A DNA stretch of 61,525 nucleotides from Octopus bimaculoides (lineage: Eukaryota), in the NCBI RefSeq assembly GCF_001194135.2, contig NC_068994.1, forward strand, positions 19,025,670 to 19,087,194, in the 5' to 3' direction. The position numbers and the translations under genes were made by a program. This document shows, piece after piece, positions 7,455-61,525 of this stretch (the stretch's first letter is position 1; each line of letters opens with the position of its first letter). Below the pieces are notes generated by a model. It had not been told where the DNA came from, made no database searches, and saw nothing but the letters and a program-made list of their open reading frames with translations.

Positions 7455-7845
7455 ACTCTTTTACTCTTCTACTTGTTTCAGTCATTTGACTGTGGCCATG
7501 CTAGAGCACTGCCTTTAGTCGAGCAAATTGATCCCAGGACTTATTCTATCAGTCTCTTTTGCCGAACCGCTAAGTTACGGGGACGTAAACACACCAGCAT
7601 CAGTTGTCAAGTGATGTTGGGGCACAAACACAGACACACAAACACAAACATATACATACTTATATATATACATATATACGACGGGCTTCTTTCAGTTTCC
7701 GTCTACCAAATCCACTCACAAGGCTTTGGTCGGCCCGAGGCTATAGTAGATGACACTTGCCCAAGGTGCCACGCAGTGGGACTGAACCCAGAACCATGTG
7801 GTTTGTAAGCAGGCTACTTACCACACAGCCACTCCTACGCCTGTA
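7455..7845 (-). mobile_element. tRNA-derived CORE-like SINE (family A) with an internal (TA/CA)n tract
   Basis: Head ggagtggctgtgtggtaag...ggttcagtccc (A/B-box-like), 'ccttgggcaagt' CORE-like motif, tail 'gtcaaatgactgaaacaagt'. Confidence 0.85.
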
Positions 7846-8579: not shown

Positions 8580-11088
8580 ATCGTCATCATTTAGTATCCG
8601 ATCTCTATGCTGGCATGGGTTAGATAGTTTGATTGGAGCTGCACCAGGTTCCAGTCTGATTTGGTATGGTTTCTACAGCTGGATGTGCCCTTCCTAATGC
8701 CAACCACTCCAGGAGTGTAATGGGTGCTTTTACATGCCACCAGCATGGGTGCCATTTAGATGACACCAGCAATTACCACAACTATGATTCATGACTGGGT
8801 GCCACTTATATGACACCAGCAATGACCATGACCACAATGCATGGGTGCCATATACATGGTACCAGCAATGACCACAACTATGATTCATGGGTGCTATTTG
8901 CATGGCACTGGCAACAACTCATGGGTGCCATTTATATGGCACTACCAATGACCATGATTCTCGGGTGCCAATTTACATGGCACCATCGATGACCACGATT
9001 ATGATGTCACAGGTGTCAATTACATGGCACCAGCACTGACCATGACAATTCACAAGTGTCATTTACATGATACTGTCAACGACCATGACTACATGACTAC
9101 GATGCATGGGTGCCACTTACCACATGACACCAGCACAGCCGCATCTACGATTTCTCTTGGCCTGATGAGTCTTCTCACACACAGCATATTGCCAGAGCTC
9201 TCGGTCACTTGTCATCACCTCTGTGAGGCCCAACGTTCAAAGATCATGCTTCACCACCTCACCCCATGTCTTCCTGGGTCTATCTTTTCCACAGGTTCCC
9301 TCCACAGTTAGAGATTGACACTTCTTTACACAGGTGTCCTTGTACACACACATCACATGACCACACCAGCACATTTGTATCTCTTGCACACTACATCTGA
9401 TGCCTCTTATGCCCAGCTTTTCTCTCAAGAGGCTTACATTCTGTTGTACATGCACACTGACATTACACATCCAGCGAAGCAATACTGGCTTCATTTCTTT
9501 CAAGCCTATACATGTCCCCGGTGGTCACAGCCTATGTTTCACTGCCATGTAGTATAGCTGTTCAGACACATACATCATACAGTCTGCTTTCACTCTGAGG
9601 GAAAGGCCCTTTGTTACCAACTGAATTTTGCCCATCCTATTCTTATTTCCGCAGCTACACTCCCCGAGCAGCATCCACTCCTACTACTGACTTGGTCACC
9701 AAGATAATAGAAGCTATCAACTACCTCTAGCTTACCTGCCTGGCATTTGATGGAGTCTATTTTCTCTACATATTGTACCTATGCATTTTCTTTACATGTA
9801 AATTATATTTTTCCCTGTTAATCTTCCTCTGATATTGCTACACCTCTTATGTGTCCATAGCTTACATCTTATAGAGTTTCTTCCTGTGCTTTTCTACAGA
9901 TTGAGTAAGGCCATCTACCTCAGGGGATTTGTGATATGTCTGCTTTCCTACTAACTAACACTTTGGTTTTTGCTAGACTAACTCTAAAGCCCTTTGATTC
10001 TCGACCTTGCTTCCACACCTAAAATTTCTTCTCTAGTTCTTGAAGTGATTCGCTATGAGATCAAAGTTATCAGCATTGAGGGGCTCCCAGAGCAGCTTGT
10101 CTTAAATTCTTCTGTTATTGCCTGGAGGACTATGATGAACAGGAGAGGGCAGAGGACTTCAGGGTAGATGTAGGGGTTCACCAAGGATCCCCCTACTTCT
10201 ACCCTGAATTCATCACTATGTTTGTCGCTAATCTCCACCTTACTGATGGCATCTCTGTACATGGCTTATGTCACTTTCACCAACTACTCATCTATCTCTA
10301 GTTTTTGCTTTGACCATCAGGGATTGAAAGACCCTATCAAAGGCTTTCTCCATGTCAACAAAAGTCAAGTACAAAGGTTTATCTTTGGCTAGGTACCTCT
10401 TCTTCACCACTGATGCTATATTTCTTACCAGAAATATAGCATCAGTGGTGCTTCTCCCTGGCACAAAATCAAACTGCATCTCATCCTAATTAGTTGGGCT
10501 ATGACCCTCTCTGTAACTTTCATCACCTGATCTAACAGTTTGATACATCTGTAATTATTTCTGTCCAGGGCATCACCTTTACATTTGTAGCTGTTGACTC
10601 TGATGCTGCTACACCAGTCATTGGGTATGACTCCCTCATGTACAACCTGATTTACTATATGGGTAACAAGTCCATACCCAACACCACCAGATTTTTTAAG
10701 CATCTCAGCAGTGATTCCTGATGGGCCAGGGGCTTTCCTGGTCTTCATGGCTTTATCTACCGATTGCCGGTCCTTCTGTTGAATTCACTTTAGGCAGACT
10801 CTCCTTCTCCCATGCATTCTCTACATTTAAGTAGCCTTTCATAGTGACACTTCCAAGCCTCTTTCTTTACAAAGTTACTAACTGTAAGTGAACCAACATC
10901 CATGCAGACACACTCCTCTCCCACAACATCACAATTTTCCCTGGCACACTGTCTTGCAAGCTGAAACACTTCACGCCTCTGGTCCTCATGTTGTAAGACA
11001 CTGGCAACCTTCTCCCTTTCTGCTTCATTCCTAGCTAAATATACCTGCTTCCAAGTTTCCCTTCTAGCTGCCTGATATAACTCCTTAT

Positions 11089-11145: not shown

Positions 11146-11461
11146 ATAATACAAATGATATGTGAGTATATGCATATATACGTACATGTATGTACATACC
11201 TTCATCTACATGTATATATAGATACATATCTGGGTACAGGACATCACAAAAAAACGTGGACAAAATGAAAAACAGAACATAAACAGAGCACAAAAACACA
11301 CAGGCCACATAGGGAACATTTCCTTCATCAGCTGCCACCATTCTAAAACTAAGCGTNNNNNNNNNNNNNNNNNNNNNNNNNNNNNNNNNNNNNNNNNNNN
11401 NNNNNNNNNNNNNNNNNNNNNNNNNNNNNNNNNNNNNNNNNNNNNNNNNNNNNNNNNNNNN

Positions 11462-14456: not shown

Positions 14457-14573
14457 TANNNNNNNNNNNNNNNNNNNNNNNNNNNNNNNNNNNNNNNNNN
14501 NNNNNNNNNNNNNNNNNNNNNNNNNNNNNNNNNNNNNNNNNNNNNNNNNNNNNNNNNNATATATATGTAAGTA

Positions 14574-16958
14574 CGAGGTAGTATCAAAAGGTTCCCAGGC
14601 TAGTTATGTTTAAGGATCTAACTGGTTTGGCTGCCAGCATTTCAAAACTTAAAATTTATCGAAAATTTTAAAATTTGGTATAATAATATACTTTTCCAAG
14701 CTCAATTGCTGGAGTTATTTCACTTTTTCCAGATAACTGTTTTAAAAAAGTTACAGGGGTTTAAACTTTGATCATTTTCACCCAATCAGAAGACAGGATT
14801 TGGAAGTTGTCATTTTGTGCATAACTATACATTTTGTCATCAACATCCTGAAAGCAGCATGTGTTGTCAATAGTTGTAAACAACACATGTTTTGTAGTTT
14901 GAAGAATTCAATATGCATTTAATGTGATAGTACAAACTTAAAAGATTTATCCAAAAAACGTTATTTAGCTGTTATTTTTAGCACACCTCACAACCACCTC
15001 AATGACAAAAAAAAATGAGTAAACAAGTAGTTTTGAGCATTCAATATGCATTGAATGCAAATGCGATGAACAACACGTTACCTGCAATAAACACATTACA
15101 ATTTTCCTCCACAAATGGTTTCAATACAGTTTTAACAGAAAGGTCTGAAGAATTAGATGAAAGTTCTCTAGTAATTTTCTTTCGTGTAAATAAATGTTTA
15201 TGTTAATTTGAAAATTTGCCAGCAAAATCTTATAAAATGTCAATGTTCTAAAAGATGTACATGTGTATATGTTATATATGGAAATAAAAAAGTGAACAAA
15301 ATATGCTTAAAAAACAAACGTTTTAGTATGCAATAAGCAACACATTACAAAATATTTTTAAAATTAAAAATGTAAGTTAGAAATACATTCAATCAATTTC
15401 TCAAACAAATCACAATTTTTGTATCTCCTGTGCCACATAAATTCACAGAGATATGAATCTACCATAGAATGGTGAGTCCCACAGTGTCCTTTATTACTTC
15501 GCTTCACAGAGGTCCACATACTCTCCACTTGTTGAGTGTGGGTACCATCTTTCAAGTTAACAAATCCAACACTGTGGTTCAACGTTCTATGCTCAAAATT
15601 GTAACCATTAACTTCAGGAATGTGAGAGTACACCCTCCATAAATCATCGGAAATTGTGGTTCCTGGAAGAATTGAGTGATGTATGCATTCTTCCAGTGTG
15701 TCAGGATTTGGATTATACCCTTTTTTTGAAGGTACAACACAATATCCTCTTCTGTTTTCAGTGTTTGCTTCATAGAAGTGGGGTTACAGGAGCTTGCTGC
15801 CATAATCAAACAGTAAAATTTCCAACAGAATACTGTGTCAAATTTGTCAACACGTACTTTCTCACAGTTAAAAGAGTTCTTGGTTCCACTTGTTACTATG
15901 AAAACAGGCATGAATGTGCCTGTGGCTTACAATTGGCTAAAATTACCCAAAATTTTCAAACTTTAATTGCTAATAACTCTTTATTGATTTATGGTGAAAA
16001 TGATTTTCACATCATTCATTAGCCAATAAAAGTGCATCATTATACTGAATATGAAATCAATTCGAACAGAATTGATGCTGGCAGCCAAACCAACTAGATC
16101 CATGCTTAATAAAAAGTAACTTATTTACCTAAGTTTTAACATCATCTCCTTTGAAAATAGTCAATTTGTGCAACAATATACTGGTCCCAGCATTCCTACC
16201 ACTTTTAGAATCCAGTCTGGAAGTCATTTTCTGTAAGTGAATTGAGGACTTTCTGCAATTCACACTGGATCTTGACAACAGTGTTAAAATGGCAACCATT
16301 TGAGCTACATTTTCATCTTGGAGATGAGATGGAAGTCTGCAGGTGCTAAATCTGGTGAAAAGGGTGGGTGTAGAAGCAATACCATATTGTTTTTAGCAAG
16401 AAACTCATGCATGAGGAGAACACAGTGATAGGGTGCATTATCGTCATGAAGAATCTAATTTATCACAAATCCGGTAGCTTTCACCAAATGTGTCCCTAAA
16501 ATACTTCAAAAAGTTGTTGATTTCCTCCAATGATCCTCATGCACAACCTGATGAATTGTCTCCCCATTTCTAGGAGTGATGCTCATGGCAGGCCTTCAAG
16601 ATCACTCATCGTCTTCCAGAGATGTTCTTCTGCTTTTGAAGAGCCAGTGCCACCCAAAATGTTGTGTACAATCATTGCCTCATTGCCAGAGCATGTTCAG
16701 TGTCTCTGTGGCACGCTTCCCAAGATTAACACAAAATTTCATGTTGGCTTTTTATTCTGTCCATGACATAATCGCAGACCACAGCATACACATTATCACA
16801 AAAACACAAATTTCACAAGTTACGAAGTAAACATAGCAATGTCAGCCGGCACACTGCCTCATGAAGGTCACTGTTAGTTCTCACTGTGTACACAACTGTG
16901 TGCTGCCATTTGTTGGAGCATTACAGAACTAGTCTGGGAACTTCTTCATACCACCTCA
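14574..16958 (-). mobile_element. Degenerate, internally deleted mariner hosting a Merlin element
   Basis: TIRs CGAGGTAGTATCAAAAGGTTCCCAGGCTAGTT / AACTAGTCTGGGAACTTCTTCATACCACCTCA with TA flanks. Remnants 'KFCVNLGKRATETLNML', 'HDDNAP', 'HPPFSPDLAPADF'. Confidence 0.85.
14614..16101 (-). mobile_element. Merlin (IS1595/ISXO2-like) DNA transposon, internally deleted
   Basis: ~28-bp TIRs GGATCTA(A/G)(C/T)TGGTTTGGCTGCCAGCAT, 8-bp TSD atgtttaa/atgcttaa, motifs 'ILPGTTISDDLWRVY', 'NHSVGFVNLKDGTHTQQVESMW', 'DSYLCEFMW'. Confidence 0.88.
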
Positions 16959-21797: not shown

Positions 21798-22075
21798 GAA
21801 TTTGTATGTCTGTGTTTGTCCCTCCACCATCGCTTGACAACTGCTGTTGGTATGTTTATGTCCCTGGAACTTAGCAGTTTGGCAAAAAAGACTGATAGAA
21901 TAAGTACTAAGCTTACAAAGAATAAGTCCTGGGGTCAATTTGTTCGACTAAAGGCGGTGCTCCAGCATGGCCACAGTCAAATANNNNNNNNNNCTGGGGT
22001 CAATTTGTTCGACTAAAGGCGGTGCTCCAGCATGGCCACAGTCAAATAACTGAAACAAGTAAAAGAATAAAAGAA
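21370..22075. mobile_element. Two family-A SINE halves in inverted orientation around a ~230-bp (TA/CA)n tract
   Basis: Minus-strand tail at 21370-21560 and plus-strand tail at 21800-22075. Confidence 0.7.
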
Positions 22076-22560: not shown

Positions 22561-23487
22561 GCAACAGTTTTCTTTCAGTTTCTGTCTACCAAAACCACTC
22601 ACAAGGCTTTGGTCAGCCGGAGGCTATAGTAGAAGACACTTAGCCAAGATGCCACACAGTGGGACTGAACCTAGAACTATGGGGGTGGGAAGCAAGCTTC
22701 TTACCTCACAACCAGACCTGTGCCATAATACATCTAAAATGTTCTGCAATGTTTAAAAAAAATAGTAGGGTGTGATTTGAAGAAGATTTGGCTGCTATTT
22801 CCAGCAAGTTAAGCAAGTGGTCAGCACCTCACTTCTTTGCCATGAGGTTAAATGGCAACATTTCTAAAAAAAGCAATACTTTTACAAAGTATTTCATTTA
22901 GGAAATAGAGTTACACCATGGCAACACATCAGACTTAAATGCATTTAGTTTATTCTCCTAACATCATCATCATCATCATCATCGTTTAACGTCCGCTTTC
23001 CATGGGTTGGATGATTTGACTGAGGACTGGCAAGCCAGAAGGCTGCACCAGGCCCCAATCTGATCTGGCAGATTTTCTACAGCTGGATGCCCTTCCTAAC
23101 ATCAACCACTCCAAGAGTGTAGTGGGTGCTTTTACGTGCCACTGGCACGAGGGCCAGTTACACGGTACTGGCAATGGCCTCGCTCAAAAGGTGTTTCTTA
23201 CGTGCCACCTGCACGGGAGCCAGTCCAGCGGCACTGGCAACGACCTCACTTGAATGATTTTCTAACGTGCCACCAGCACAAGTGCTAGAAGGTGACGCTG
23301 GTAATGATTACACTCATATCTAAATCCTAATATAATTAAGTTTTATTTTCTAATCTTCCAAGGTCACTAAAAACAAATAAAATAAATACATGTAACATCC
23401 TGAACTGATTTAATTGGTTTTACCTCTCTTCTTCACAGTTATTTAACTTACAAGAAGCAGAGACCAAATTCTCTTAAACCATACCCT

Positions 23488-23888
23488 AGGCGCAGGAGTG
23501 GCTGTGTGGTAAGTAGCCCGCTTACCAACTACATGGTTCCATGTTCAATCCCACTGCATGGTACCTTGGGCAAGTGTCTTCTACTATAGCCTCGGATCAC
23601 CCAAAGCCTTGTGAGCAAATTTGGTAGATGGAAACTGAAAGAAGCCCATCATATATGTGTGTGTGTGTGTGTGTGTGTATGTTTGCATGTCTGTGTTTGT
23701 CTCTCCACCATTGCTTGACAATTGATGTTGGTGTGTTTACATCCCTGTAATTTAGCGGTTCGGCAAAAGAGACTGATAGAATAAGTACTAGGCTTACAAA
23801 GAATAAGTCCTGAGGTCGATATGTTCGACTAAAGGTGGTGCTCCAGCATGGCCGAAGTCAAATAATTGAAACAAATAAAAGAGTGAAA
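23488..23888 (+). mobile_element. Full-length family-A SINE
   Basis: aggcgcaggagtggctgtgtggtaag head, CORE-like motif, central (TG)n, tail ...gtcaaataattgaaacaaataaaagag. Confidence 0.85.
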
Positions 23889-24059: not shown

Positions 24060-26579
24060 GGGAAAACAGCAAGTTGGCAGAATTGTTAGCATGCCAGGCA
24101 AAATGTTTACTGACATTTCTTCCAGCTCCAGCTCTTTACGTTCTGAGTTCAAATTCCGCTGAGGTTGACTTTACCTTTCATCCTTTTGGGGTTGATTAAA
24201 TAAGTACCAATCAAGCACTGAGGTTGGTGTAAGCGACTAGCCCCTCCTCCATTGAGATTTCAGGCCTTGTGCCTATAGCAAAAGTACGTAAAACAGTAAG
24301 CTGGCATTCGTTGGCATGCTGAGAAAAATGCTTAGCAGCATTTCATCTGTTTTTATGTTCTTAGTTCAAATTCTGCCAAGGTTGCATTTGTCCTTCATCC
24401 TTTTGTGGTTGATAAAATAAGTACCAGTTGAGCACTGGTGTTGATGTAATCAGCTTACCCCATCCCGAAATTACTGGCCTTGTGCCAAAAATTGAAACCG
24501 TTATCATTATTAGAGTAGGGAAGACAGTGAGTTGGCAGAATTCCTAGCATGCTGAGCAAAATGCTTATTGACATTTCATCTTTCTGGGCTTGTATACTCA
24601 ATTGTTTTGATCCCAACAAATTTCTGACCTTGTGCTTGTGTCAGATATTATTATCATCATCATTATAATTATTAAGGCGGTGAGCTAGCAGAATCATTAG
24701 CATACAGGGCAAAATGCTTAGTAGCATTTTTTTCTGTCTTTATGTTCTGAGTCAAAATTCCACTGAGGTTGACTTTGCCTTTCATCTTTATGGGGTTGAT
24801 AAAACATGGACTAGTTAAGCACTGGGATAAATGTAATCAATTTATCCCCTTCTCCGAACTTGCTAGCCTTGTGCAAAAATCTGAAATTATTATTATTATT
24901 ATTATTATTATTATTGAACATGGTGAGCAGGCAGAATNNNNNNNNNNNNNNNNNNNNNNNNNNNNNNNNNNNNNNNNNNNNNNNNNNNNNNNNNNNNNNN
25001 NNNNNNNNNNNNNNNNNNNNNNNNNNAATTATTATTATTATTATTATTATTATTATTGAACATGGTGAGCAGGCAGAATTGTATGTGTGCCAGACAAAAT
25101 GCTTAGCAGCATTTCTTTCAGCTTTACATTCCACCAAGGTCACTCTTTCAGAGTTGATAAAATAAATACCTGTTGAGTACTGGGGCTAATGTACTTGGCT
25201 ACCCACCTGCTCCCAATTTTCAGACTTTATGCCTATAGTAGAAAGGATTATCATTATCATTAACTAAAGTGTAATGACAGATATGGTCAGATGCCTTACC
25301 AGAGACCCAAGTTCATTGGTAAAGTATTTTACTACATTTGCTAGTGAAAGTCAATTTCACTACACTTAAAATGTGTTCCAAGAATACTCATAAGGGCCCT
25401 CTCCCTCATGAATGAATGATAAATCACTCTACATTATCATCTGCCATGTTGACGATCCCTCAGCCCCTGAGTCCTTCCCTGAATGTTGTACTAACATTGA
25501 AACCCAGCACCCTAACACTTACTAAAATCTGCCTTGTGAACATCAACAATAACTGAGCTGAGTTTAAGGCAGTGAGCTGGCAGAGTTGTTAGCATGCCAG
25601 GCAAAATGCTTAGCAGCAATTTGTCTGCCTTTAATGTTCTGAGTTCAAATTCTGCTGAGGTTGACTTTGCTTTCCTTCCTTTCGGGATCAATAAAAGAAG
25701 TATCAGTTGAACACGGGTCAATGTAAGCGACTTACCTTCATTCCAAACCTGTTGCACTTGTACCAAAAATTTGAAACTAATAATTGAGCTGAGAGCCTAT
25801 GGGCAACAGGATGAACTCTAGTTATGTTAACTGGTTTATAGGCTACTTTGAGGTTCATATTTTCAAGGCATTTGGGTAGTAAGTACAAGACTCCCCACTG
25901 AATAGGATACCAATTAGTTTCAGGATTAATCCTCATGGTGACACTGGTGTTCATTTTCAATTTAGTACATTGAAATAATGTGAAAACAAATGCCTTGCTC
26001 AAGGACAGTGGTGACATTTGATCTGAGATTCAAACCCACAGCCTAAAAACTGAGAGCCCAACACCCTTGCCACTAGACCATGCACTTTCGCAACTATCAT
26101 GTAAGGTTCATTTAAAAGTTGTGTCTGTCTGGAAAAGCTATTGAAAATTTTTTTTTTTTCCTATTTAGCTTCTCTTGTAGATTGCACCNNNNNNNNNNNN
26201 NNNNNNNNNNNNNNNNNNNNNNNNNNNNNNNNNNNNNNNNNNNNNNNNNNNNNNNNNNNNNNNNNNNNNNNNNNNNNNNNNNNNNNNNNNNNNNNNNNNN
26301 NNNNNNNNNNNNNNNNNNNNNNNNNNNNNNNNNNNNAACAAACATAGAAACAGATACACTACATGTAAAGAAATGGAATCAAAGAGGATAAACCAATCAT
26401 TTCAAATGTATTACTTCATTGAAAGAATATTATCAGGAGGGTTGCTTTGAAGAGCAATCACAGAGTGGTTAAGAAATCTGCTTCACAAATATGTGGTTTC
26501 AGGTTCAACTCCTTAGTATGGCACCTTGAACAAGAGTCTCCTACTATAATCTCAGGCTGATCATTGCTGTGTAAGTGAA

Positions 26580-27549: not shown

Positions 27550-28186
27550 TTACTCGTTCTTTTTTGCTAAGAAGGAATATATTCACAGACACGACAGAAC
27601 TGGGACCTATATACACTGGAAGCTATGCCAACACTATAGAATAACAACAGAAAAAAGATGGTATAAACACACGCCAGAAAAGGTCACAGAAAACGAGAAA
27701 GCAACCATATTCTGGGATATGCCAATACACACAGATAGAGAAATTAAGGCAAATAGACCAGATATAGTTGTCAAAGATCATGAAGAATAAAAATGCTTTC
27801 TAATTGATGTATCAATACCAGCAGATGACAACGTTTCTCTAAAAGAAATGGAAAAACTTTCAAAATACAAAGACCTGGAAATAGAGATAACTCGAATGTG
27901 GAATCTAAAANNNNNNNNNNNNNNNNNNNNNNNNNNNNNNNNNNNNNNNNNNNNNNNNNNNTAGGTATAATAAAAAAATATTCAGACAAATACATAACAA
28001 AAACACCAGGACTTACAAATATATATAACATACAGAAAATTGCACTACTGGGTACTGCACACATTCTACGCAAAACACTTTCAATACAGTAAACATAAGA
28101 GCACCACAGCAAACCACAGCACATACCCAAGGTGCACAGAGCTGCGCTCGGTAGTGAAGTGAAAGCACGTTATAAAAATAAAACTA

Positions 28187-28190
<4 letters not shown>
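27550..28190 (+). mobile_element. 3' fragment of an R4/Dong-type LINE with restriction-like endonuclease, followed by (AAT)n
   Basis: YIHRHD, FWDMPIHTDREIKANRPDIVV, LIDVSIPADDN, EKLSKYKDLEIE, IQKIALLGTAHILRKTL. Confidence 0.9.
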
Positions 28191-28246
<56 letters not shown>

Positions 28247-28283
28247 AATAATAGTAATGATAATAGTAATAACGATAATAATG

Positions 28284-29052: not shown

Positions 29053-29567
29053 CAAAGACCTCAAAATTGAAGTATTCAAGATGTAGGGCATGAAGTTGAA
29101 AACAATATCAATAATAATTGGAGCATTGGGCATGATTAAAAAACATATGAACAAAAATGAAGAAACTATACCTAGAATCAAAAAAGTAGCTCAGCCAGGA
29201 ACAGCGCACATCCTACACAAGACACTATCAATTCAATAATACAACCCAAGGAAAACAATCCATAAATACAAGACACATTCTATATAGCAGTTATCCAAAA
29301 TAAACTACCACCAGCAGGCTATAAAACCCAACACATTACACACACAACACAATACAAACACTAATACAACAAAAGACTGCACCATACCACACTAAAAACA
29401 GAAATTGATGCAATACAATATAGGGAAAAGTTTGTACACTCCAAACAATAAGAAAAGAACACACAATGCTGTGTACAACCTAGCAACATGGAGGTGAACC
29501 AGTATGATGCAGTAGAAATTTGCCTGAAACTACCAAATGTTGAATAATAATAATAATAATAATAATG

Positions 29568-29601
<34 letters not shown>

Positions 29602-30046
29602 TTTCAAATTTTGACACAGGGCCAGCAATTCTAAGAGCAGTGGGTAAGTGAGATTACATCAACGTCAGTGCTCAGTTGAAATTTATTTTATCAACCCCGA
29701 AATGATGAAAAGTAGTCACTTCAGTGGAATTTGAACTCAGAATGTAAAGATGGAGAAATGCTGCTAAGCATTTTACTTGGTGTGCTAACAATTCTACCAG
29801 CTCACCACCTTAATAATCCTTCTATTATAAGCACAAGGCCTGAAATTTGTTGGGAGGAGACTAATCAATTACCTTGACCCCAGTGTTTCACTGGTACTTA
29901 ATTTATTAATTCCGAAAAGATGAAAGGAAAAGTCAACCTCAGCGGAATTTGAACTCATAACATAAAGATGGATGAAATGCCACTAAGCATTTTTCCCAGT
30001 ATGCTAATGATTCTGCCAGCTTGCTGCCTGAATAATGATAATAATG

Positions 30047-30094
<48 letters not shown>

Positions 30095-30165: not shown

Positions 30166-30323
30166 AATAATAATGACATAGTGAAAACAGTAACAACATC
30201 TCTGAATACTCAATACGTTATATAAATAATTAGTACTGATATGTCAGGAACTCCCTGATATTCAGAGTATCACAACATAATATAACATGTTATGCATCAT
30301 ACATTACTTGAAACAAATGTTTA

Positions 30324-30961
30324 CTACACCAGAGTATCATGCTTGTTTTCTGTGTGGAATTTTGGGAGTGACAAGGGAAGACAATCGAGAAAAGAGTCCA
30401 ATTCGAAAGGGTCGTGGGTAGAGTGACTTGCTTTTAAATTGAGATCCATAACACAATGGGATGGACTGATAAATGGACTTTCAGTTTTGTAGTTACCAAT
30501 GCAGGGACAACTTGAACATAGTTTTGGATGATATGCAGTCTTCTCTGGGTAATTAATTATATTGTGTGGGGTAGAGCAGTTCATGTCAACATTTTGGTAA
30601 AACTGTTTGGTGACTATACAAGGAGAATTAATGAAAGATGAAAAGTAATTATTGGAATTAGTTTTTTCCTCTGAATGTTTGGATGTCGTACAGTGACAAT
30701 TAGAGATGAGCAAATCCTCAACAGGGTTCACTGAGCAATGGGAATATTCTGTGGTGGGTATGGGTGAGTGAGGTTCAGGATGTGTTTGTTCAGTGGATGA
30801 GTTAAACAGAGCGGAACAAACAAAATTCGCACAGTGCCAGATTTGTTTGACTAATGATGAAGTGGAATCCAGAAATGTTTTGCATTTAAATATTGAATTG
30901 TGATTTGAAGGTGTTAAAGCTTTCTTCAGTAGTTTATGTTGCACTCTGTGAAATTTCAGTG
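30324..30961 (-). CDS. alpha-catenin-like gene, apparent last coding exon (LKFHRVQHKLLKKAL...FLDSTSSLVKQIWHCANFV + low-complexity tail, TAG)
   Basis: Long pyrimidine tract then ttccAG, phase 1 as required, and 211 open codons in AT-rich DNA. The start fits the M3 end 'FIDASRLVYDGIRDI'. The 3' end (stop versus an internal donor) is uncertain. Confidence 0.75.
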
Positions 30962-31832: not shown

Positions 31833-32030
31833 ACTGATGAATCTGATCAATAAGGTGGATAACATGTAATGGATTTGGGAAGATGTTTCCACAAGATTTC
31901 AGATCAGACAGGAACTGAGCCACTCGGGAACACTTTGCACGAATAGAACGACTTGTTCTTAGTAGATACTGCAGATCACCTTTGTTAGCAGCATCAACAC
32001 ACACATTCATTTCATCCTCTAATCGTTTTA
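31833..32030 (-). CDS. alpha-catenin-like gene, exon 10 (KRLEDEMNVCVDAANKGDLQYLLRTSRSIRAKCSRVAQFL...IHQ)
   Basis: ttttcacAG acceptor, T|GTAAGT donor, 198 nt, phase 1-1. Close match to M3 'HILEDVNKCVIALQEKDVDGLDRTAGAIRGRAARVIHVV'. Confidence 0.9.
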
Positions 32031-34883: not shown

Positions 34884-35114
34884 AAGACATTGTGATGAAA
34901 ATGTCAGGATCCACCATTGTGTCTAGTAAAAATACAAGATGAGCCAACAACTTCTTCCATTCTTTTATAAGACTTTTTAGTCTTGTCGTCATGGATTCAG
35001 ACAAAGAATCAAATGGATTAACTGAAATTTTTTGAATATGTAGACTAACTAAAGAAGAGATTTCTGGATCAAGGCATTCCAAGTTTTTGATTGTCATTTC
35101 AAACTGCTGCACAA
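34884..35114 (-). CDS. alpha-catenin-like gene, exon 9 (VQQFEMTIKNLECLDPEI...LDTMVDPDIFITMS)
   Basis: ttctctAG acceptor, T|GTAAGT donor, 231 nt, phase 1-1. Fits 'SASQLEALCPQVI...QWEKQVRVLTDAVDDITSIDDFLAVS'. Confidence 0.88.
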
Positions 35115-37659: not shown

Positions 37660-37774
37660 ACTTTGATCTTCTGGAGCCAGCGATGATAAAACGTGCAACT
37701 TCGTACATATTGTCTAAATGATTGTAAAAGTAATCTTGTAAGGATTTCAGTCTTTCTTGACAGCAATCACTCTG
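37660..37774 (-). CDS. alpha-catenin-like gene, exon 8 (QSDCCQERLKSLQDYFYNHLDNMYEVARFIIAGSRRSK); not in the ORF track
   Basis: ccAG acceptor (NAGNAG), T|GTAAGT donor, 115 nt, phase 0-1. Fits M2 'FREHANKLIEVANLACSIS'. Confidence 0.82.
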
Positions 37775-39952: not shown

Positions 39953-40130
39953 TGTTTCTGGAAATAAAATTGGATCAACTAATCGTTCTAATGGTTCTGA
40001 AGTTTCAGCAAAGACATTGACCATAAGATGAAGAATTTCCTGGTTTACTTTATCCTCCAGTTGATAAAGTAAGTCAACAACTTTGTCACAGTCATCCTCA
40101 TAATTGTTACACAGCCTATTATAGCTGTCA
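39953..40130 (-). CDS. alpha-catenin-like gene, exon 7 (DSYNRLCNNYEDD...VNVFAETSEPLERLVDPILFPET); not in the ORF track
   Basis: ttttatatAG acceptor, ACA|GTAAGT donor, 178 nt, phase 2-0. 'VFAETSEPLERLV' matches alpha-catenin 'DSFLETNVPLLVLI' at the M1/M2 junction. Confidence 0.88.
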
Positions 40131-40269: not shown

Positions 40270-41005
40270 ATACTCTTTTACTTGTTTCAGTCATTTGACT
40301 GCGGCCATGCTGGAGCACCGACTTTAGTCAAGAAAATCGACCCAGGACTTATTCTTTGTAAGCCTAGTACTTATTCTATCGGTCTCTCTTTGCCGAACCG
40401 CTAAGTTACGGGGACGTAAACGCACCAGCATCGGTTGTTAAGTGATGGTGGGGTGACAAACACAGACACACAAACACACATACATATATACATATATATA
40501 TATACATATATACAACGGGCTTCTTTCAGTTTCCGTCTACCAAATCCACTCACAAGACTTTGGTGAGCCCAAGGCTATAGTAGAAGACACTTGCCCAAGG
40601 TGCCACGCAGTGGAACTGAACCCGGAACCATATGGTTGGTAAGCAAGCTACTTANNNNNNNNNNGAAAATCGACCCAGGACTTATTCTTTGTAAGCCTAG
40701 TACTTATTCTATCGGTCTCTCTTTGCCGAACCGCTAAGTTACGGGGACGTAAACGCACCAGCATCGGTTGTTAAGTGATGGTGGGGTGACAAACACAGAC
40801 ACACAAACACACATACATATATACATATATATATATACATATATACAACGGGCTTCTTTCAGTTTCCGTCTACCAAATCCACTCACAAGACTTTGGTGAG
40901 CCCAAGGCTATAGTAGAAGACACTTGCCCAAGGTGCCACGCAGTGGAACTGAACCCGGAACCATATGGTTGGTAAGCAAGCTACTTACCACACAGCCACT
41001 CCTGG
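40270..41005 (-). mobile_element. Family-A SINE, partly duplicated across a 10-N gap
   Basis: Identical ~320-bp blocks on both sides of the gap at 40654-40663. Confidence 0.8.
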
Positions 41006-41289: not shown

Positions 41290-42760
41290 TCACAATGGTT
41301 AGTGAGAGCTGTGCGAGCCATGTACAGAGATGCTGCCAGTAAGGTGAGGGTTGGAAATGAGTACAGCAATGAATTCCGGGTAGAGGTAGGGGTCCACCAA
41401 GGTTCCGTCCTCAGCCCCCTCTTATTTATCATAGTCCTCCAGGCAATCACAGAGGAGTTCAAGACAGGTTGCCCCTGGGAGCTCCTCTATGCTGATGACC
41501 TTGCCCTAATTGCGGAGTCACTATCAGAACTAGAGGAGAAGTTTCAGGTGTGGAAGCAAGGTCTAGAATTGAAGGGCCTTAGAGTCAACCTAGCTAAAAC
41601 CAAAATCCTAATAAGTAGGAAGGTAGATAAAACACAAACCCCTTCAGGTAGATGGCCCTACTCNNNNNNNNNNNNNNNNNNNNNNNNNNNNNNNNNNNNN
41701 NNNNNNNNNNNNNNNNNNNNNNNNNNNNNNNNNNNNNNNNNNNNNNNNNNNNNNNNNNNNNNNNNNNNNNNNNNNNNNNNNNNNNNNNNNNNNNNNNNNN
41801 NNNNNNNNNNNNNNNNNNNNNNNNNNNNNNNNNNNNNNNNNNNNNNNNNNNNNNNNNNNNNNNNNNNNNNNNNNNNNNNNNNNNNNNNNNNNNNNNNNNN
41901 NNNNNNNNNNNNNNNNNNNNNNNNNNNNNNNNNNNNNNNNNNNNNNNNNNNNNNNNNNNNNNNNNNNNNNNNNNNNNNNNNNNNNNNNNNNNNNNNNNNN
42001 NNNNNNNNNNNNNNNNNNNNNNNNNNNNNNNNNNNNNNNNNNNNNNNNNNNNNNNNNNNNNNNNNNNNNNNNNNNNNNNNNNNNNNNNNNNNNNNNNNNN
42101 NNNNNNNNNNNNNNNNNNNNNNNNNNNNNNNNNNNNNNNNNNNNNNNNNNNNNNNNNNNNNNNNNNNNNNNNNNNNNNNNNNNNNNNNNNNNNNNNNNNN
42201 NNNNNNNNNNNNNNNNNNNNNNNNNNNNNNNNNNNNNNNNNNNNNNNNNNNNNNNNNNNNNNNNNNNNNNNNNNNNNNNNNNNNNNNNNNNNNNNNNNNN
42301 NNNNNNNNNNNNNNNNNNNNNNNNNNNNNNNNNNNNNNNNNNNNNNNNNNNNNNNNNNNNNNNNNNNNNNNNNNNNNNNNNNNNNNNNNNNNNNNNNNNN
42401 NNNNNNNNNNNNNNNNNNNNNNNNNNNNNNNNNNNNNNNNNNNNNNNNNNNNNNNNNNNNNNNNNNNNNNNNNNNNNNNNNNNNNNNNNNNNNNNNNNNN
42501 NNNGGTGGCACATAAAAGACACCATTTCGAGCGTGGCCGTTGCCAGTATCGCCTGACTGGCCTTCGTGCAGGTGACACGTAAAAGCACCTACTACACTCT
42601 CTGAGTGGTTGGCGTTAGGAAGGGCATCCAGCTGTAGAAACTCTGCCAAATTTAGATTGGAGCCTGGTGTTGCCATCTGGTTTCACCAGTCCTCAGTCAA
42701 ATCGTCCAACCCATGCTAGCATGGAAAGCGGACGTTAAACGATGATGATGATGATGATGA
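41290..42760 (+). mobile_element. 5'-truncated, relatively young RTE LINE spanning a gap
   Basis: Open 'VGVHQGSVLSPLLFIIVL...ELLYADDL...GLRVNLAKTK'; after the gap, the 3' UTR repeat, terminal module and (GAT)n. Confidence 0.92.
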
Positions 42761-43594: not shown

Positions 43595-43668
43595 TTGCAG
43601 TATAAATCTTGAGTTTCTGCACTGACTGAATCTTGAAATTCATACAAGCTGTTTTTAGCTTCTAGAAG
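43595..43668 (-). CDS. alpha-catenin-like gene, exon 6 (LLEAKNSLYEFQDSVSAETQDLYC); not in the ORF track
   Basis: ttttctatAG acceptor, AA|GTAAGC donor, 74 nt, phase 0-2, which is the phase the next exon requires. Confidence 0.82.
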
Positions 43669-45477: not shown

Positions 45478-45624
45478 CTTAAGGCAAATATTGATCAGTG
45501 GACTTCTACGTTCTTCAACAATGAGATGAGCCACAAACATTGCATGTTTGATTAACAGGTAGATCCATGTTTCAAAATGTTGATCAAGGCTGGTCCAGTT
45601 TTCCTCAGTTAAAGCTGCTTTGGC
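45478..45624 (-). CDS. alpha-catenin-like gene, exon 5 (AKAALTEENWTSLDQHFE...EERRSPLINICLK)
   Basis: ttcAG acceptor, AAG|GTAATA donor, 147 nt, phase 0-0. Fits M1 'LEERLESIISGAALMAD...DDRRERIVAEC'. Confidence 0.85.
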
Positions 45625-48866: not shown

Positions 48867-48998
48867 CTTTCCTAGAAGACTGATAAATTGTCCAGATTCA
48901 TTGCTTTCTGTTAAGTCCAATGGTAGCTTGTTCAAAACAGTATCGCTAATTAAAGTAATGGTATTAAGGATTTGATAGATCAAGAAATCTCGGTTAGC
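48867..48998 (-). CDS. alpha-catenin-like gene, exon 4 (ANRDFLIYQILNTITLISDTV...GQFISLLGK); not in the ORF track
   Basis: atAG acceptor, AAG|GTAACT donor, 132 nt, phase 0-0. Contains ANRD, as in alpha-catenin 'KANRDLIYKQLQQAVTGISNAA'. Confidence 0.88.
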
Positions 48999-50014: not shown

Positions 50015-50415
50015 CTTTTAGTCTTTTACTTGTTTCAGTCATTTGACTGTGGCCATGCTGGAGCACCGCCTTTAGTCGAGCAAATCGACCCCAGGACTTA
50101 TTCTTTGTAAGCCTAGTACTTATTCTATCGGTTTCTTTTGCTGAACTGCTAAGTTACGGGGACGTAAACACACCACCAGCGGTTGTCAAGCGATGTTGGT
50201 GGGGAGGGGACAAACACAGACACACAAACACACACACATATATATATACATATATACGACAGGCTTCTTTCAGTTTCCGTCTACCAAATCCACTCACAAG
50301 GCTTTGGTCGGCCCGAGGCTATAGCAGAAGACACTTGCCCAAGGTGCCACACAGTGGGACTGAACCCGGAACCGTGTGGTTGGTAAGGAAGCTACTTACC
50401 ACACAGCCACTCCAG
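50015..50415 (-). mobile_element. Full-length, young-looking family-A SINE in the intron between exons 3 and 4
   Basis: Near-consensus head, CORE-like motif, internal (TA)n and (tttac/ttta)n tail. Confidence 0.88.
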
Positions 50416-50590: not shown

Positions 50591-50773
50591 CTCGGCTGAT
50601 TTGTTATTTGGTTCAGCAATACAAACTGTCAGGGCTTCTTGTAAAGTAGGAAGAGTCATTCTAATTGTATGTAAGCAGTTGGCAAGGAGGTCTTGAAGCT
50701 GCTGCTGTCCAGCAAGATTATCATGGTGTCTCATGCAGATCTTGTTTAGTAACAGTAACTCATCTGACAGCTC
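50591..50773 (-). CDS. alpha-catenin-like gene, exon 3 (ELSDELLLLNKICMRHHDNL...CIAEPNNKSAE)
   Basis: ttccAG acceptor, GAG|GTAGTT donor, 183 nt, phase 0-0. Fits catenin N2 'ACLQHPDVAAYK'. Confidence 0.85.
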
Positions 50774-52389
50774 CTGGAACCGAAACAACAAAAAGATTAT
50801 TAAAAAGAAACACAACAAAAAACAAAGACAAAACTATCAAAGACATATCTAATTAGAATTTAAGTAACTAATCTTTTGACATTTTTATTCTTTCCTTTCA
50901 AAGAAGATTTACAAAGAAGAAACAAATGCCAGATTTGTTAAGGAATGGATACAAAAGTGATGCATAGATTTGTATCTAAGATAAAGCAGTGGCTTCATCT
51001 CATATCTTAGTTTCTTTGCTGAATTCTTCCTTCACGGTGATAGTGTTGATGACTATATAGACCAATTAAATCAATCACATTTACAGTTGCAAAAAAAAAA
51101 AAAATGTGAATAAAGCAAGAAATTGATTAAGAAACATAAGCCGACAAGTCATAAATCTGTAAACACAAAGATTTGTGCACTTGAAAATCCCAACCACGTA
51201 TTCTAAACTTTCTAATCCAATTATTATACCAATTATACCGAGTTATCATCATCTTACAACAATTAATTCTGGCATAAGATGTTTAGACAAAAATTATTTC
51301 CAAGAAGGATTCATCATCATCATCATCATCATTATCTAATGTCTGTTTTCCGTGCTGGCATGAGTTGGATGGTTTGACTGAAAACTGGTAATCTGGGGAG
51401 CTGCACCAGGTTTCAATCTGATTTGGTATGGTTTCTACAGCTGGATGCCCTTCCTAATGCCAACCACTCCAAGAGTGTAGTGGGTGCTTTTTACATGCCA
51501 ATGGCACGTAACACTGGCATCAGCCATGACTACAATCTCACCCGGCTTGACAGGTCTTCTTAAGCACGGCATATTGCCAAAGGTCTCGGTCACTGGCTCC
51601 ATGAGGCCCAAAGTTCAAAGGGTGCTTTTTATGTGCCATATAATAAATCATCTATATTAGACTGATAGGGCCAGCTGTACAAACTTTCAAGACTTAGAAC
51701 ATGCAGTCCTGATCACAGGTTTTAGAGCTGCGGTAGAAGACTCATTTGTTACTGATGCTATGTTGAGTCTGTGGCAGCCACTCAAATCTGAGTAGCTTAA
51801 TCTACCCAGCTTATAACTTAGAAACGCAGGCATGAGGAACATTATATATTTGACTTGTAACAAACTCAAATTTTTTCTTCAGCCTACTGAAAGAGAAAAT
51901 GAAAGCTGAAACAACTAAACCACTCCCAAACAGATACCTGTGATTAGAAAAGACTCTGCATATCACTTGGGTACTTTATTGATCCATAATTGATTGTTTT
52001 TTAGTGTAACAGAGAGAATTCTTCAGTGTTGAATTATAATCTTACTCATTGGTCTGTTTAGTATTGATATTATTCATATTAGTTACTATACAATTGCTGT
52101 TAATGTTATTGTTAGAGCTGTTGGTGCTAATGGTGCTGTAGACTTTGTTATACTAATGACAAAGCATATGAAATACATAAATATAAAATATATTCTAGGA
52201 TCCAACAAAAGTAACGATGGATGTATTATTATAACGTCAATGCTAATGCTGGTGACTGTGGATGGTGGAACATATTGTTGTGATGATGGTGGTGGTGGTG
52301 GTGGTGGGGGTCATAATGGTATGTATCAAATAAAATATTCAAAAACAGAAGTTACTTGTTTCAGGAAAAATGGGCTTCCATTTATTATA

Positions 52390-54190
52390 TGCCATGGAAG
52401 GTTGAATTTTAGTGAGAAGGACAGGGGAAGAGTTTGGAGAGAGTATATGGAGGGAATTATGAATGAGAAGAATGAATGGGATCAGAGGGTGGAAGTTGCT
52501 GTAGTGGAGAGAGTTAGTCAGGAAAAATTAGTAGGGGCAATGAAGGAGATGAAAACAGGAAAGGCAGCTGGACCATCAGAAGTAAGTGTGGAAATGATAA
52601 CTGCAAGTGGAGAGATAGGGATTGTTGTGATGATGGAGCTTTGCCAGGAGTGAGCTGGATGGAAGAGGAATGCCAGATTATCGAGCACTAAATGTGGTGG
52701 TACTGATCTTTAAGGGAAAGGGGGATGCAATGTGTTGTGGGGCATATAGGGGAGTGAAGTTATTAGAGCATGCAATGAAGATTGTGGAAAGGGTGTTGAA
52801 GGGGAGAATTCGGAAAATGGTGGATGTGGATGAGATGCAATTTGGTTTTATGCCAGGAAAGGGGATAATAGATGCAGTGTTCATTGTAAGGAGATTGCAG
52901 GAGGAATACCGAGATAAGGAGAAGGTGTTGTACATGTGCTTCATTGATCTGGAAAAGGCATTTGATAGGGTTCCAAGGAAGGTGATTGAGTGGGTATTGA
53001 GGAAGAGAGGTGTGCTAGAGATAATAGTGAGGGCAGTGATGAGTTTGTATGAAGGGGTAAAGACAAGAGTTAGAATTGGATCGGAGCTGTCAGAGGAGTT
53101 TGCAGTAAAAGTTGGTGTGCATCAGAGATCTGTGTTATCACCATTGTTGTTTGCAATAGTGGTTGATGTGGTGACAGAGAGTGCAAGAGAGGGATTGATA
53201 ATGGAGATACTGTATGCGGATGACCTTGTTCTAATGAGTGAGACAATGGAGGGATTAAAGAAGACATTTCAGAAATGAAAGGAGGCGTTTGAAAGCAAGA
53301 GTTTGAAGGTAAACCTCAGAAAGACAAAGGTGATGGTGAGCAGGGTGGAAAGAGAAATGTTAGTGAGTAAGGTAGGACTATGTGGTGTGTGTGGGAGGAG
53401 GGTAATGGCAAATGCGGTGTTGTGCATGAAATGTGGGAAATGGATTCATGGTAGATGTACGAAAATGAAGGTGATCCTGAAACTGGCAAGAGAGTTTGTT
53501 TGTAGAAGATGTGAGAAAGGAACTGGAGGACTGGCGGAACCAGTGGAAATGGTGAGAGGGTTTTGCTATTTGGGAGGTAGGGTGGATGTAAGTGATGGAT
53601 GTGAAGCAGCTGTGACAGTAAGAGTGAGATTTGGCTGGGTGAAGTTCAGGGAATGTAGAGCGTTATTAAATGGGAAAAGGTTCTCCTTGAAGATGAAAGG
53701 AAGGGTTTATCAGAGTTGCATGAGATCTGCAATCCTGTATGGGAGTGAGACATGGTGTCTGAGGGAAAGCAAAATGGCAATTATGAGAAGGACCGAGAGA
53801 GCAACAGTGAGAGAAATGTGTGGTGTGAAACTATTGGATAAAAGGAGGACTGAGGACTTGATAGGGATGCTGGTGTTGGAGGAATTAGTGGAACAGCTGG
53901 CAAGGGCAAATGGAGTGCGGTGGTACGGATATGTTTTGAGGAGGAATGAGGATCATGTTCTGAGGAGAGTGCTTGAGTTTAAAGAAAATGAACTGCGAAA
54001 GCAAGGTCGACCATAGAAAACGTGGAGGGGATTGGTGGAGGGGGAGATTGGGAGGGTTGGTTAGAGGAGGGATGATGCTCAAAACTGGGCGAGATGGTGC
54101 GAGAGCGGTTGCTGTAAGAGTGAGGTAGACCCCCCCACCACCATTAACGGGGACAAACCCAGATTTTAAACATTGGAATTCATCATCGTC
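52390..54190 (+). mobile_element. 5'-truncated degenerate RTE LINE, second family
   Basis: MKTGKAAGPS, QFGFMPGKG, FIDLEKAFDRV, VGVHQRSVLSP, ILYADDL, LYGSETW, VRWYGYVLRR, GRP; stops at 52653, 53278 and 54016. Confidence 0.93.
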
Positions 54191-54934: not shown

Positions 54935-55538
54935 TNNNNNNNNNNNNNNNNNNNNNNNNNNNNNNNNNNNNNNNNNNNNNNNNNNNNNNNNNNNNNNNNN
55001 NNNNNNNNNNNNNNNNNNNNNNNNNNNNNNNNNNNNNNNNNNNNNNNNNNNNNNNNNNNNNNNNNNNNNNNNNNNNNNNNNNNNNNNNNNNNNNNNNNNN
55101 NNNNNNNNNNNNNNNNNNNNNNNNNNNNNNNNNNNNNNNNNNNNNNNNNNNNNNNNNNNNNNNNNNNNNNNNNNNNNNNNNNNNNNNNNNNNNNNNNNNN
55201 NNNNNNNNNNNNNNNNNNNNNNNNNNNNNNNNNNNNNNNNNNNNNNNNNNNNNNNNNNNNNNNNNNNNNNNNNNNNNNNNNNNNNNNNNNNNNNNNNNNN
55301 NNNNNNNNNNNNNNNNNNNNNNNNNNNNNNNNNNNNNNNNNNNNNNGATAATTATGTGATGTTTAGAAATAATTAAATGCTTACAAACTGTATGATTTGT
55401 AAACATCTGATCACTAAAGTACGAAACAATTACACGGAAAGTCATTCTTATTTACGTTTTTTATCATTTTTTATCATACATGTATATATGCACGCATACA
55501 TGTGTGTGCATGTGTTTGTGTGTGTGTGTGTGCGCGTG

Positions 55539-57915: not shown

Positions 57916-58041
57916 CTTAAAATATTTGCTTACCAACTCTGGGTTGGAGCTGTTCAATTTCAGGAAAGCTACTCTATTTTTAACCCGACCTACAATCATA
58001 GGTAATTCTTTGAGTTCTGAGCTACTGGCTATAATTAACAC
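57916..58041 (-). CDS. alpha-catenin-like gene, exon 2 (VLIIASSSELKEL...PELVSKYFK)
   Basis: ttttctttttacAG acceptor, AAG|GTATGG donor, 126 nt, phase 0-0. A second in-frame donor lies at 57934. Confidence 0.78.
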
Positions 58042-58980: not shown

Positions 58981-59136
58981 CTGAAATGTCTGTTGCAGAA
59001 CTTCTTTGGAAGCATTAATTAACTGTTTGCACATGCCACTGCTTGCATCATGCTCCAGTTGATTCATAGTTCTATAAATTCCATTACTGGCATCCTGCAA
59101 TTGTTCACAGGCTTGGGACATTTGAGCTTTCAGTGA
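58981..59136 (-). CDS. alpha-catenin/vinculin-superfamily gene, first visible exon (SLKAQMSQACEQL...EVLQQTFQ)
   Basis: Pyrimidine tract then aacAG acceptor, GTATAC donor, 156 nt, phase 0-0. Resembles the alpha-catenin N1 segment 'AVEDVRKQGDLMK...NMVRAARALLSAVTRLLILAD'. Confidence 0.8.

Positions 59137-61486: not shown

Positions 61487-61525
<39 letters not shown>
61320..61525. repeat. Compound (TA)n/(TG)n microsatellite
   Basis: Direct inspection. Confidence 0.9.

Follow-up and report, generated by a model that had tools for sequence, protein, structure and literature searches.

A truncated alpha-catenin-like protein of cephalopods with a constrained tail and a putative PDZ-ligand C-terminus

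Introduction

In textbooks, adhesion receptors are linked to actin by the vinculin/alpha-catenin superfamily. To our knowledge, a fourth group of the superfamily, 'alpha-catenin-like' and conserved throughout metazoans, is on record but has never been characterised beyond the Drosophila proteins Serendipity-alpha (Sry-alpha) and Spitting Image (Spt, CG8247). Here, we describe a gene of this kind, LOC106874078 of Octopus bimaculoides, whose product ends without an actin-binding domain (ABD). It lies on the minus strand of a 61,525-nucleotide stretch of the genome (RefSeq assembly GCF_001194135.2, contig NC_068994.1, positions 19,025,670 to 19,087,194 of the forward strand), which we call the window and to which all positions below refer. 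A first-pass annotation of the window had read the gene as encoding a catenin-like protein with alpha-catenin-type bundles and a low-complexity tail.

Phylogenetically, Sry-alpha and Spt belong to a separate superfamily clade that includes uncharacterised vertebrate members (Zheng et al. 2013, PMC3820746). In the same work Sry-alpha, which has no ABD, and residues 250-461 of Spt, from its middle region, co-sedimented with filamentous actin (F-actin). An 'uncharacterized alpha-catenin-like clade' is credited to Miller et al. 2013 in passages of two papers citing that study (PMC4948710 and PMC13245172).

Results

Family assignment and predicted fold

Searching a word index of proteins with the candidate exons of the window, joined end to end, retrieved the 809-residue NCBI entry 'uncharacterized protein LOC106874078 [Octopus bimaculoides]' (P0001), together with proteins from Argonauta hians (P0002, 822 residues) and Acanthosepion pharaonis (P0003, 724 residues). 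All three matched the Pfam Vinculin family (PF01044, cut-off 38.1 bits), the octopus protein with 131.8 bits over residues 20-570 and the other two with 99.2 and 119 bits respectively; the window exons alone reached 44.7 bits. In a profile search of the PDB, residues 82-558 of alphaE-catenin were matched in one collinear alignment (E = 2e-17), and vinculin was matched mainly through its D1 domain (E = 3e-14). An AlphaFold2 model was obtained from a 24-sequence alignment; the three cephalopod sequences alone gave a predicted local distance difference test score (pLDDT) of 42 and an unusable model. Comparison of this model by Foldseek placed alphaE-catenin first (6o3e/4igg/4k1n, E = 3e-15, template modelling score about 0.72 normalised to the target, alphaE-catenin 82-883), followed by sponge vinculin. 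According to these matches, the octopus protein has alpha-catenin-like N-terminal (N, VH1-like) and middle (M1-M3, VH2-like) helical bundles.

The resemblance to alpha-catenins (CTNNA1/2/3, HMP-1) is one of architecture, with the best structural match and a collinear N1-N2-M1-M2-M3 order, whereas identity to them is 15-17% and the cephalopod proteins have neither their linker nor their ABD. Vinculin shares the Pfam family and the D1-like N-terminal bundles but gave the lowest profile score, and the octopus protein has no proline-rich hinge or vinculin tail domain. An exhaustive profile search returned, as its best non-cephalopod matches, proteins of 1200-1680 residues with E values of 1e-50 to 1e-78, against about 4e-15 for canonical alpha-catenin. 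These long proteins come from bivalves, gastropods, Lingula, a nemertean, an annelid, a sea star, a crinoid, an acorn worm and amphioxus; elephant shark, gars, osteoglossomorph fishes and arthropod proteins named 'serendipity alpha' by NCBI stood lower in the list. They bear inconsistent public names ('catenin alpha-1', 'vinculin-like', 'CTNNA1', 'uncharacterized'), as illustrated by Lingula XP_013384611 ('catenin alpha-1 isoform X2', 1575 residues) and Haliotis XP_067657935 ('vinculin-like', 1478 residues); further members are Branchiostoma CAH1257676 (1579 residues), Asterias XP_033633446 and Brienomyrus XP_048864764.

Scoring with family hidden Markov models (HMMs) ranked the long family first for the cephalopod proteins (277-343 bits), ahead of arthropod Sry-alpha-like proteins (135-145 bits), alpha-catenins (73-110 bits) and vinculins (58-84 bits). 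In a crude neighbour-joining tree with 100 bootstraps, alpha-catenins formed a clade (99%) that excluded the cephalopod proteins, and the latter were monophyletic (100%) inside a group uniting the long and Sry-alpha proteins. Among the sequences compared, none carried the label alpha-catulin; a 759-residue protein with a weak ABD (P0119), basal to the alpha-catenin clade in this tree, may be one. On these sequence comparisons, the octopus protein is not an alpha-catenin proper, and its closest relatives are by a large margin the long 'alpha-catenin-like' proteins of about 1500 residues. The N and M architecture described in the first-pass annotation therefore stands, while its placement among alpha-catenins does not. 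The long family is probably the alpha-catenin-like clade of Miller et al. 2013, to go by the papers that cite it, and seems essentially unstudied outside Drosophila Sry-alpha/Spt.

Search for an actin-binding domain

In the long relatives (P0005-P0017, P0027, P0030), the sequence after the N and M bundles comprises, in order, the conserved motif HPxILSPxR, a short stretch that varies, several hundred residues that are conserved and apparently helical, the ABD and a C-terminal QW+RK...DELGLRR...PxL extension. The signature of their ABD, running into this extension, reads WED..NPIVxVAK.MS.Q...M..F..G.GP...FAKI.A..C.D.....DL..YA.Q.P....QL.II..V....AD..LVKNA.NLM......AAE..VKGL...QW+RK...DELGLRR. 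Because the closest relatives carry such an unmistakable domain, it was the best possible probe. Full-length members of the long family reached 150-334 bits with the HMM of this ABD, and partial models less; for canonical alpha-catenins, vinculins and vinculin-like proteins, the score was about 85-136 bits. In the octopus, Argonauta and Acanthosepion proteins the HMM found nothing, with E values of 5.6, 0.2 and 0.035 respectively, versus 1e-28 to 1e-100 in the relatives.

The DNA searched comprised about 30 kb downstream of the gene in the window and 10 kb without Ns downstream of each of the Argonauta and Acanthosepion genes (loci L001 and L002). Six-frame translations of the window and of both loci gave a best ABD match of E = 1.9, located in an intron, while a control profile of the non-cephalopod N and M bundles recovered 8 of the 11 window exons at E <0.01. 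A profile of the region of about 700 positions between M3 and the ABD had no match in the cephalopod proteins or the flanking DNA, nor was the QW+RK...DELGLRR extension found there by profiles at the three loci. Searching with 60-odd full-length relatives by tblastn yielded downstream only scattered matches with E >0.4. Comparison of the Argonauta and Acanthosepion flanks with the window by tblastx and blastn revealed dispersed repeats and no synteny or conserved downstream coding sequence, and the only Pfam match in the larger downstream minus-strand open reading frames (ORFs) was a fragment of an ISXO2-like transposase. The gene that follows in Argonauta encodes a short-chain dehydrogenase (adh_short) on the same strand and starts 7.3 kb past the stop codon. 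A word-index search with the long-family ABD alignment returned three Mytilus/Logan fragments and missed the query proteins themselves, so that its negatives are not readable as absence and it is uninformative on cephalopods.

The octopus protein ends without an ABD, as had been claimed in the first-pass annotation, whose report of no ABD-like exon in the 30 kb downstream also held under these probes. Over about 600 residues, its N and M bundles are homologous to those of the long family; the latter runs about 850 residues further, through the ABD and the DELGLRR extension. As read from these alignments, cephalopods have a truncated form of the long family, in which those 850 or so residues are lost and a tail of 105-160 residues stands instead.

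Absence of the ABD is shared with Drosophila Sry-alpha, Spt and arthropod 'serendipity alpha'-like proteins, which belong to the same superfamily and tree group. Unlike the cephalopod proteins, however, the arthropod Sry-alpha-like proteins end in ..RIQDL..V..R...LK with no TLV, and the arthropod profile scores the cephalopod proteins below the long-family one. Since the two C-termini differ, the two losses look independent, and the cephalopod loss most likely occurred separately from that of Sry-alpha/Spt.

The last exon and its tail

A frame free of stops runs on the minus strand from 30992 down to 30327, and the reverse complement of 30300-30349 reads CAT GAT ACT CTG GTG TAG TAA, that is, H-D-T-L-V followed by two stops. 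Candidate AATAAA polyadenylation signals are located 416 and 636 nt past the stop. The last two predicted helices of M3 (residues 585-612 and 624-651) lead directly into the tail within a single exon. The features of this exon, all on the minus strand, are the following.

30961-30324, minus: last exon, residues 598-809 and the TAG stop, phase 1 (spliced reconstruction)
30807-30961, minus: last two M3 helices, to about residue 651 (AlphaFold2 secondary structure, pLDDT 74-95, and alignment to the M3 of relatives)
30327-30806, minus: tail of 160 residues, 650-809 (composition, pLDDT, dN/dS)
30762-30782, minus: HPEPHSP, residues 658-664, aligned with the post-M3 HPxILSPxR of long relatives
30495-30497, minus: candidate internal splice donor TTG/GTAACT, last exonic base 30497, weak and unsupported
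30375-30410, minus: hydrophobic-acidic patch PFELDSFLDCLP, residues 782-793 (cephalopod tail alignment)
30327-30341, minus: C-terminal H-D-T-L-V, residues 805-809 (direct read and four cephalopod sequences)
30321-30326, minus: tandem stops, TAG at 30324-30326 and TAA at 30321-30323 (direct read)

Compared with the helical body, the tail has more S (13.8%), P (9.4%), N (8.7%), T (8.7%), H (7.5%) and C (6.2%), and contains neither R nor W. The AlphaFold2 model (overall pLDDT 73) has confident helices over residues 23-653 and a pLDDT of about 30 over residues 654-809, from which the tail is predicted to be disordered. At its start, HPxILSPxR of the long relatives aligns with THPEPHSPI in Octopus and SGFLSPILT in Argonauta, the Acanthosepion alignment being not clear. 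This suggests that HPEPHSP is homologous to the family motif, possibly common to both in the form HPxxLSP, and that the tail starts out as the post-M3 segment of the family before diverging from it.

A stop-free run of 160 codons at about 33% G+C has a probability of about 4e-6, calculated from base composition. Comparison with a second Octopus species, for which a 1051-bp Logan contig (L003, run SRR11869384) spans the exon and its flanks, revealed 17 non-synonymous and 14 synonymous differences in the tail, corresponding to a dN/dS of 0.30 (binomial P = 0.002 against a neutral expectation of 79:21). The 477 nucleotides (nt) of the tail contain no insertion or deletion, versus 11 gapped positions in the adjacent intron and 30 in the 3' flank, and its best-conserved part is the last 56 codons (5 changes in 168 nt). 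The tail is real coding sequence under purifying selection.

The tail, with the patch region HDPFELDSFLDCLP and the HDTLV end followed by TAG-TAA, is thus confirmed both by direct reading and by spliced reconstruction as the first-pass annotation had described it. The internal donor that it had suggested near 30496 was rejected. With a matrix built from 34 real donors of the three cephalopod genes, TTG/GTAACT, although the exon's best GT, scored 3.1 bits, and 33 of the 34 real donors scored higher (5.5-13 bits); furthermore, conservation within the tail is highest in the codons past this site, so that coding constraint continues there. A zinc-binding reading of the Cys and His residues was also dropped, as only three cysteines are invariant and no spacing pattern is common to the three genera.

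Between genera the tail varies strongly, with an identity of about 20-45% and a length of about 105 residues in Acanthosepion versus 160 in Octopus; the product of the last exon is about 27% identical between these two. By comparison, the helical part of the octopus protein shares 62% and 43% identity with those of the two other genera. Two islands stand out. The tails share P-[FW]-x-x-x-S-[FC]-L-[DE]-x-x-P, of which P782, S787, L789 and P793 are invariant across the three genera, and the [DN]-T-L-V end is conserved where the remaining tail varies, each of the four cephalopod sequences ending in H-[DN]-T-L-V-COOH. The first-pass annotation had asked whether orthologues keep the stop position and the T-L-V end; both are common to Argonauta hians, Acanthosepion pharaonis and the second Octopus species, the reading closing with GTG TAG TAA in Argonauta and GTG TAA in Acanthosepion. 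A word-index protein search with the last-exon alignment for further tails returned only P0004, with a tool that misses true members.

Placed directly before the stop, the free D-T-L-V fits the pattern of class I PDZ-binding C-termini (X-S/T-X-V/L/I-COOH) in all four sequences, in agreement with the earlier proposal. A known ligand of this class is the t-S-L-V end of Fas, bound by PTPN13.

Gene structure

The 11 exons in the window have GT-AG borders throughout and translate, residue for residue, to positions 85-809 of the database protein. The reading from the exons therefore agrees with the public gene model, and databases already contain the protein as a predicted, uncharacterised entry. 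Besides the last exon, the gene comprises the following features, exons being defined by spliced reconstruction (and tblastn for the first).

30324 to beyond 59136, minus: gene LOC106874078, 11 exons in the window
58981-59136, minus: exon, residues 85-136, N-terminal helical bundles
57916-58041, minus: exon, residues 137-178
50591-50773, minus: exon, residues 179-239
48867-48998, minus: exon, residues 240-283
45478-45624, minus: exon, residues 284-332
43595-43668, minus: exon, residues 333-357
39953-40130, minus: exon, residues 357-416, carries FAETSEPLERLVDP
37660-37774, minus: exon, residues 417-454
34884-35114, minus: exon, residues 455-531
31833-32030, minus: exon, residues 532-597, M3 begins

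The introns measure 0.9-7.1 kb, close to the 1-7 kb estimated earlier. The stretch FAETSEPLERLVDP is the family's most conserved and gives the top exon match of the long-family N and M profile (E = 2e-14). In exon 45478-45624, the EERRSPL..C helix aligns with the alpha-catenin M1 helix RRERIVAEC, C330 being invariant in the alignment. Exons for residues 1-84 were not found in the readable sequence of the window; they may lie in the N gap at 59711-60396, which perhaps hides residues 33-84, or past the window end at 61525.

Mapping of the Argonauta and Acanthosepion proteins to their loci revealed 13 exons in each gene, with the lengths and phases of the octopus exons, and a last exon that starts at the same phase-1 position and stops directly after T-L-V. 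The genes span 10.8 kb in Argonauta hians (L001 10001-20786), 52 kb in Acanthosepion pharaonis (L002 10001-62140) and over 29 kb in Octopus; as the exons hardly differ in length or phase, the difference in size among the three genera is wholly intronic.

Discussion

We propose that the cephalopod protein is a truncated long-family adaptor with a constrained tail and a PDZ-type end, an explanation to which, taken as a whole, we assign a probability of roughly 0.6. The protein has retained the N-terminal and M1-M3 bundles, and everything after the post-M3 motif, namely the conserved helical-looking sequence, the five-helix ABD and the DELGLRR extension, has been replaced by a predicted disordered tail with two conserved islands, the hydrophobic-acidic patch and the free H-[DN]-T-L-V terminus. 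We envisage helical bundles that bind partners, perhaps also F-actin by way of the M region, as Sry-alpha and Spt do, and a C-terminus engaged by a class I PDZ domain on a scaffold of the junctions or cortex; PDZ tethering would then replace anchoring to actin through the ABD. The first-pass annotation had deduced from the missing domain a protein with no F-actin binding; this does not follow, as Sry-alpha and Spt, both ABD-less, bind F-actin through their middle region (PMC3820746). As roles of the bundles, beta-catenin binding and mechanosensing are at most an analogy with alpha-catenin.

Several points weigh against this explanation. The C-terminus is a putative class I PDZ ligand by virtue of a pattern of four residues that is conserved in four sequences, which are also all the tails compared (n = 4). 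The position of the cephalopod proteins within the long/Sry-alpha group is poorly supported (bootstrap 27-43), and the 43% attachment to the fast-evolving arthropod branch may be due to long-branch attraction. None of the three cephalopod proteins matched Pfam Serendipity_A (PF05482) at E up to 0.1, a family matched with 137 bits by an arthropod protein (P0048) and with 34-60 bits by some long-family members. As the gene model is read from genomic DNA, an extra isoform may exist, and as the search covered three loci, a separate gene carrying the lost half or a full-length paralogue may be present elsewhere in cephalopod genomes. Finally, six N gaps lie downstream of the stop in the window; totalling 503 bp, they are far too small for about 850 residues, and the lost half is therefore not hidden there.

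The conservation of the end and the patch would be explained equally if both were functional in some other way than through a PDZ domain, for instance as a 14-3-3 mode III site (pS/pT-X1-2-COOH), a stability signal or an LD-like patch, the PFELDSFLDCLP patch perhaps folding back on the protein's own bundles or binding another bundle protein. In favour of this view, which we consider unlikely though worth keeping in mind, the model places a short helix of low confidence in the patch (residues 783-789), and the patch reads LDxFLxxL in Octopus, like the paxillin-type LD motif. The LD-like reading is, however, confined to Octopus, the corresponding sequences being FDSFLDCP in Argonauta and VMSCLEYI in Acanthosepion, and the C-terminal Thr has no upstream Arg/Lys, which most 14-3-3 sites have. 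An improbable alternative is an alpha-catenin paralogue that binds beta-catenin and vinculin but not F-actin and acts as a decoy at adherens junctions. The N-M architecture, the ERR...C helix aligning with M1 RRERIVAEC and the missing ABD all agree with it. The tree, the HMM scores (73-110 bits for alpha-catenin versus 277-343 for the long family) and the low identity nevertheless place the protein outside alpha-catenins, and the beta-catenin decoy weighs less accordingly; moreover, canonical alpha-catenin and the parent family occur side by side throughout bilaterians, and relatives without an ABD bind F-actin directly (PMC3820746).

That the end is an artefact of annotation or assembly, or belongs to one isoform among others, with ABD exons in the N gaps, farther off or on another scaffold, appears very improbable. 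The downstream gaps and a gene model drawn from DNA alone leave room for it, and short and long predicted forms occur elsewhere, as in Scleropages (661, 205 and 926 residues). Yet the same stop is found in three genera whose assemblies and annotations are independent, and in two of them the gap-free 10-kb flanks give no signal of the ABD or of the region preceding it; the adjoining gene in Argonauta is close by, the gaps are small for what is lost, and purifying selection on the tail extends up to the stop. We attach hardly any credence to the tail being a functionless remnant of the truncation, produced by read-through into a former linker or intron of a decaying gene. Its low complexity, predicted disorder, variable length and low identity between genera are what such a remnant would show, but the dN/dS, the absence of indels, the frame and stop kept since octopods and decapods separated, the invariant end and patch residues and the well-conserved helical part contradict it.

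The truncation is common to octopods and a cuttlefish, and is therefore older than their split, by our estimate more than 250 million years ago. Extending the adaptor explanation, it is conceivable, as a tentative scenario against which we would still lay odds, that in the coleoid ancestor an ancient alpha-catenin-like linker of the cytoskeleton lost its entire actin-binding half, gained or exposed a PDZ-ligand end and switched from direct anchoring to actin to tethering by a PDZ scaffold. If true, an adaptor of the junction or cortex was rewired in this one lineage, in parallel to and independently of the arthropod loss of the ABD in Sry-alpha/Spt. The adaptor explanation holds no surprise of principle, since ABD-less family members and PDZ-ligand ends were both already known. 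The cephalopod gene does show that the alpha-catenin-like group can lose the ABD and the sequence preceding it and yet stay under selection for a very long time. It also offers a compact natural construct, made of the N and M bundles and a short tail with two islands, for probing the partners of the head and middle bundles, and is a warning against naming a protein 'alpha-catenin' from domain matches alone.

Other features of the window

The window contains ten assembly gaps seen as runs of N, at 11357-11461, 14459-14558, 21984-21993, 24938-25026, 26189-26336, 27911-27961, 40655-40664, 41664-42503, 54936-55346 and 59711-60396. A search of the whole window against Rfam gave no match. Downstream of the gene, the ORF fragment at 15367-15783 (minus strand) encodes the ISXO2-like DDE transposase piece mentioned above (Pfam PF12762, E = 7e-10), presumably a transposon relic, and pieces of a reverse-transcriptase-like ORF (e.g. 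DEMQFDFVPGRSTTDAIFLVR) lie at 9240-10784 (minus strand), two of which had no Pfam match at E up to 0.001. Within the 7.1-kb intron, on the strand opposite to the gene, a fragment of a retrotransposon without long terminal repeats (non-LTR) occupies 52156-54016 (plus strand), with reverse-transcriptase ORFs and a YADD box in the ORF at 52670-53278; it accounts for the strong skew of G over C (0.59) at 52-54 kb.

A dispersed repeat of about 89 bp occurs at 7679-7767, 22572-22648, 23563-23650, 40515-40601, 40848-40934 and 50257-50345. It is 82-87% identical to copies in the Argonauta flanks and resembles a short interspersed element, common to octopod genera; similar copies lie at 29700-30030, immediately 3' of the stop codon. 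The same 3' flank carries (AAT)n microsatellites of 19-31 copies at 28190-28282, 29543-29599 and 30031-30094, the nearest of which starts 230 nt past the stop codon.

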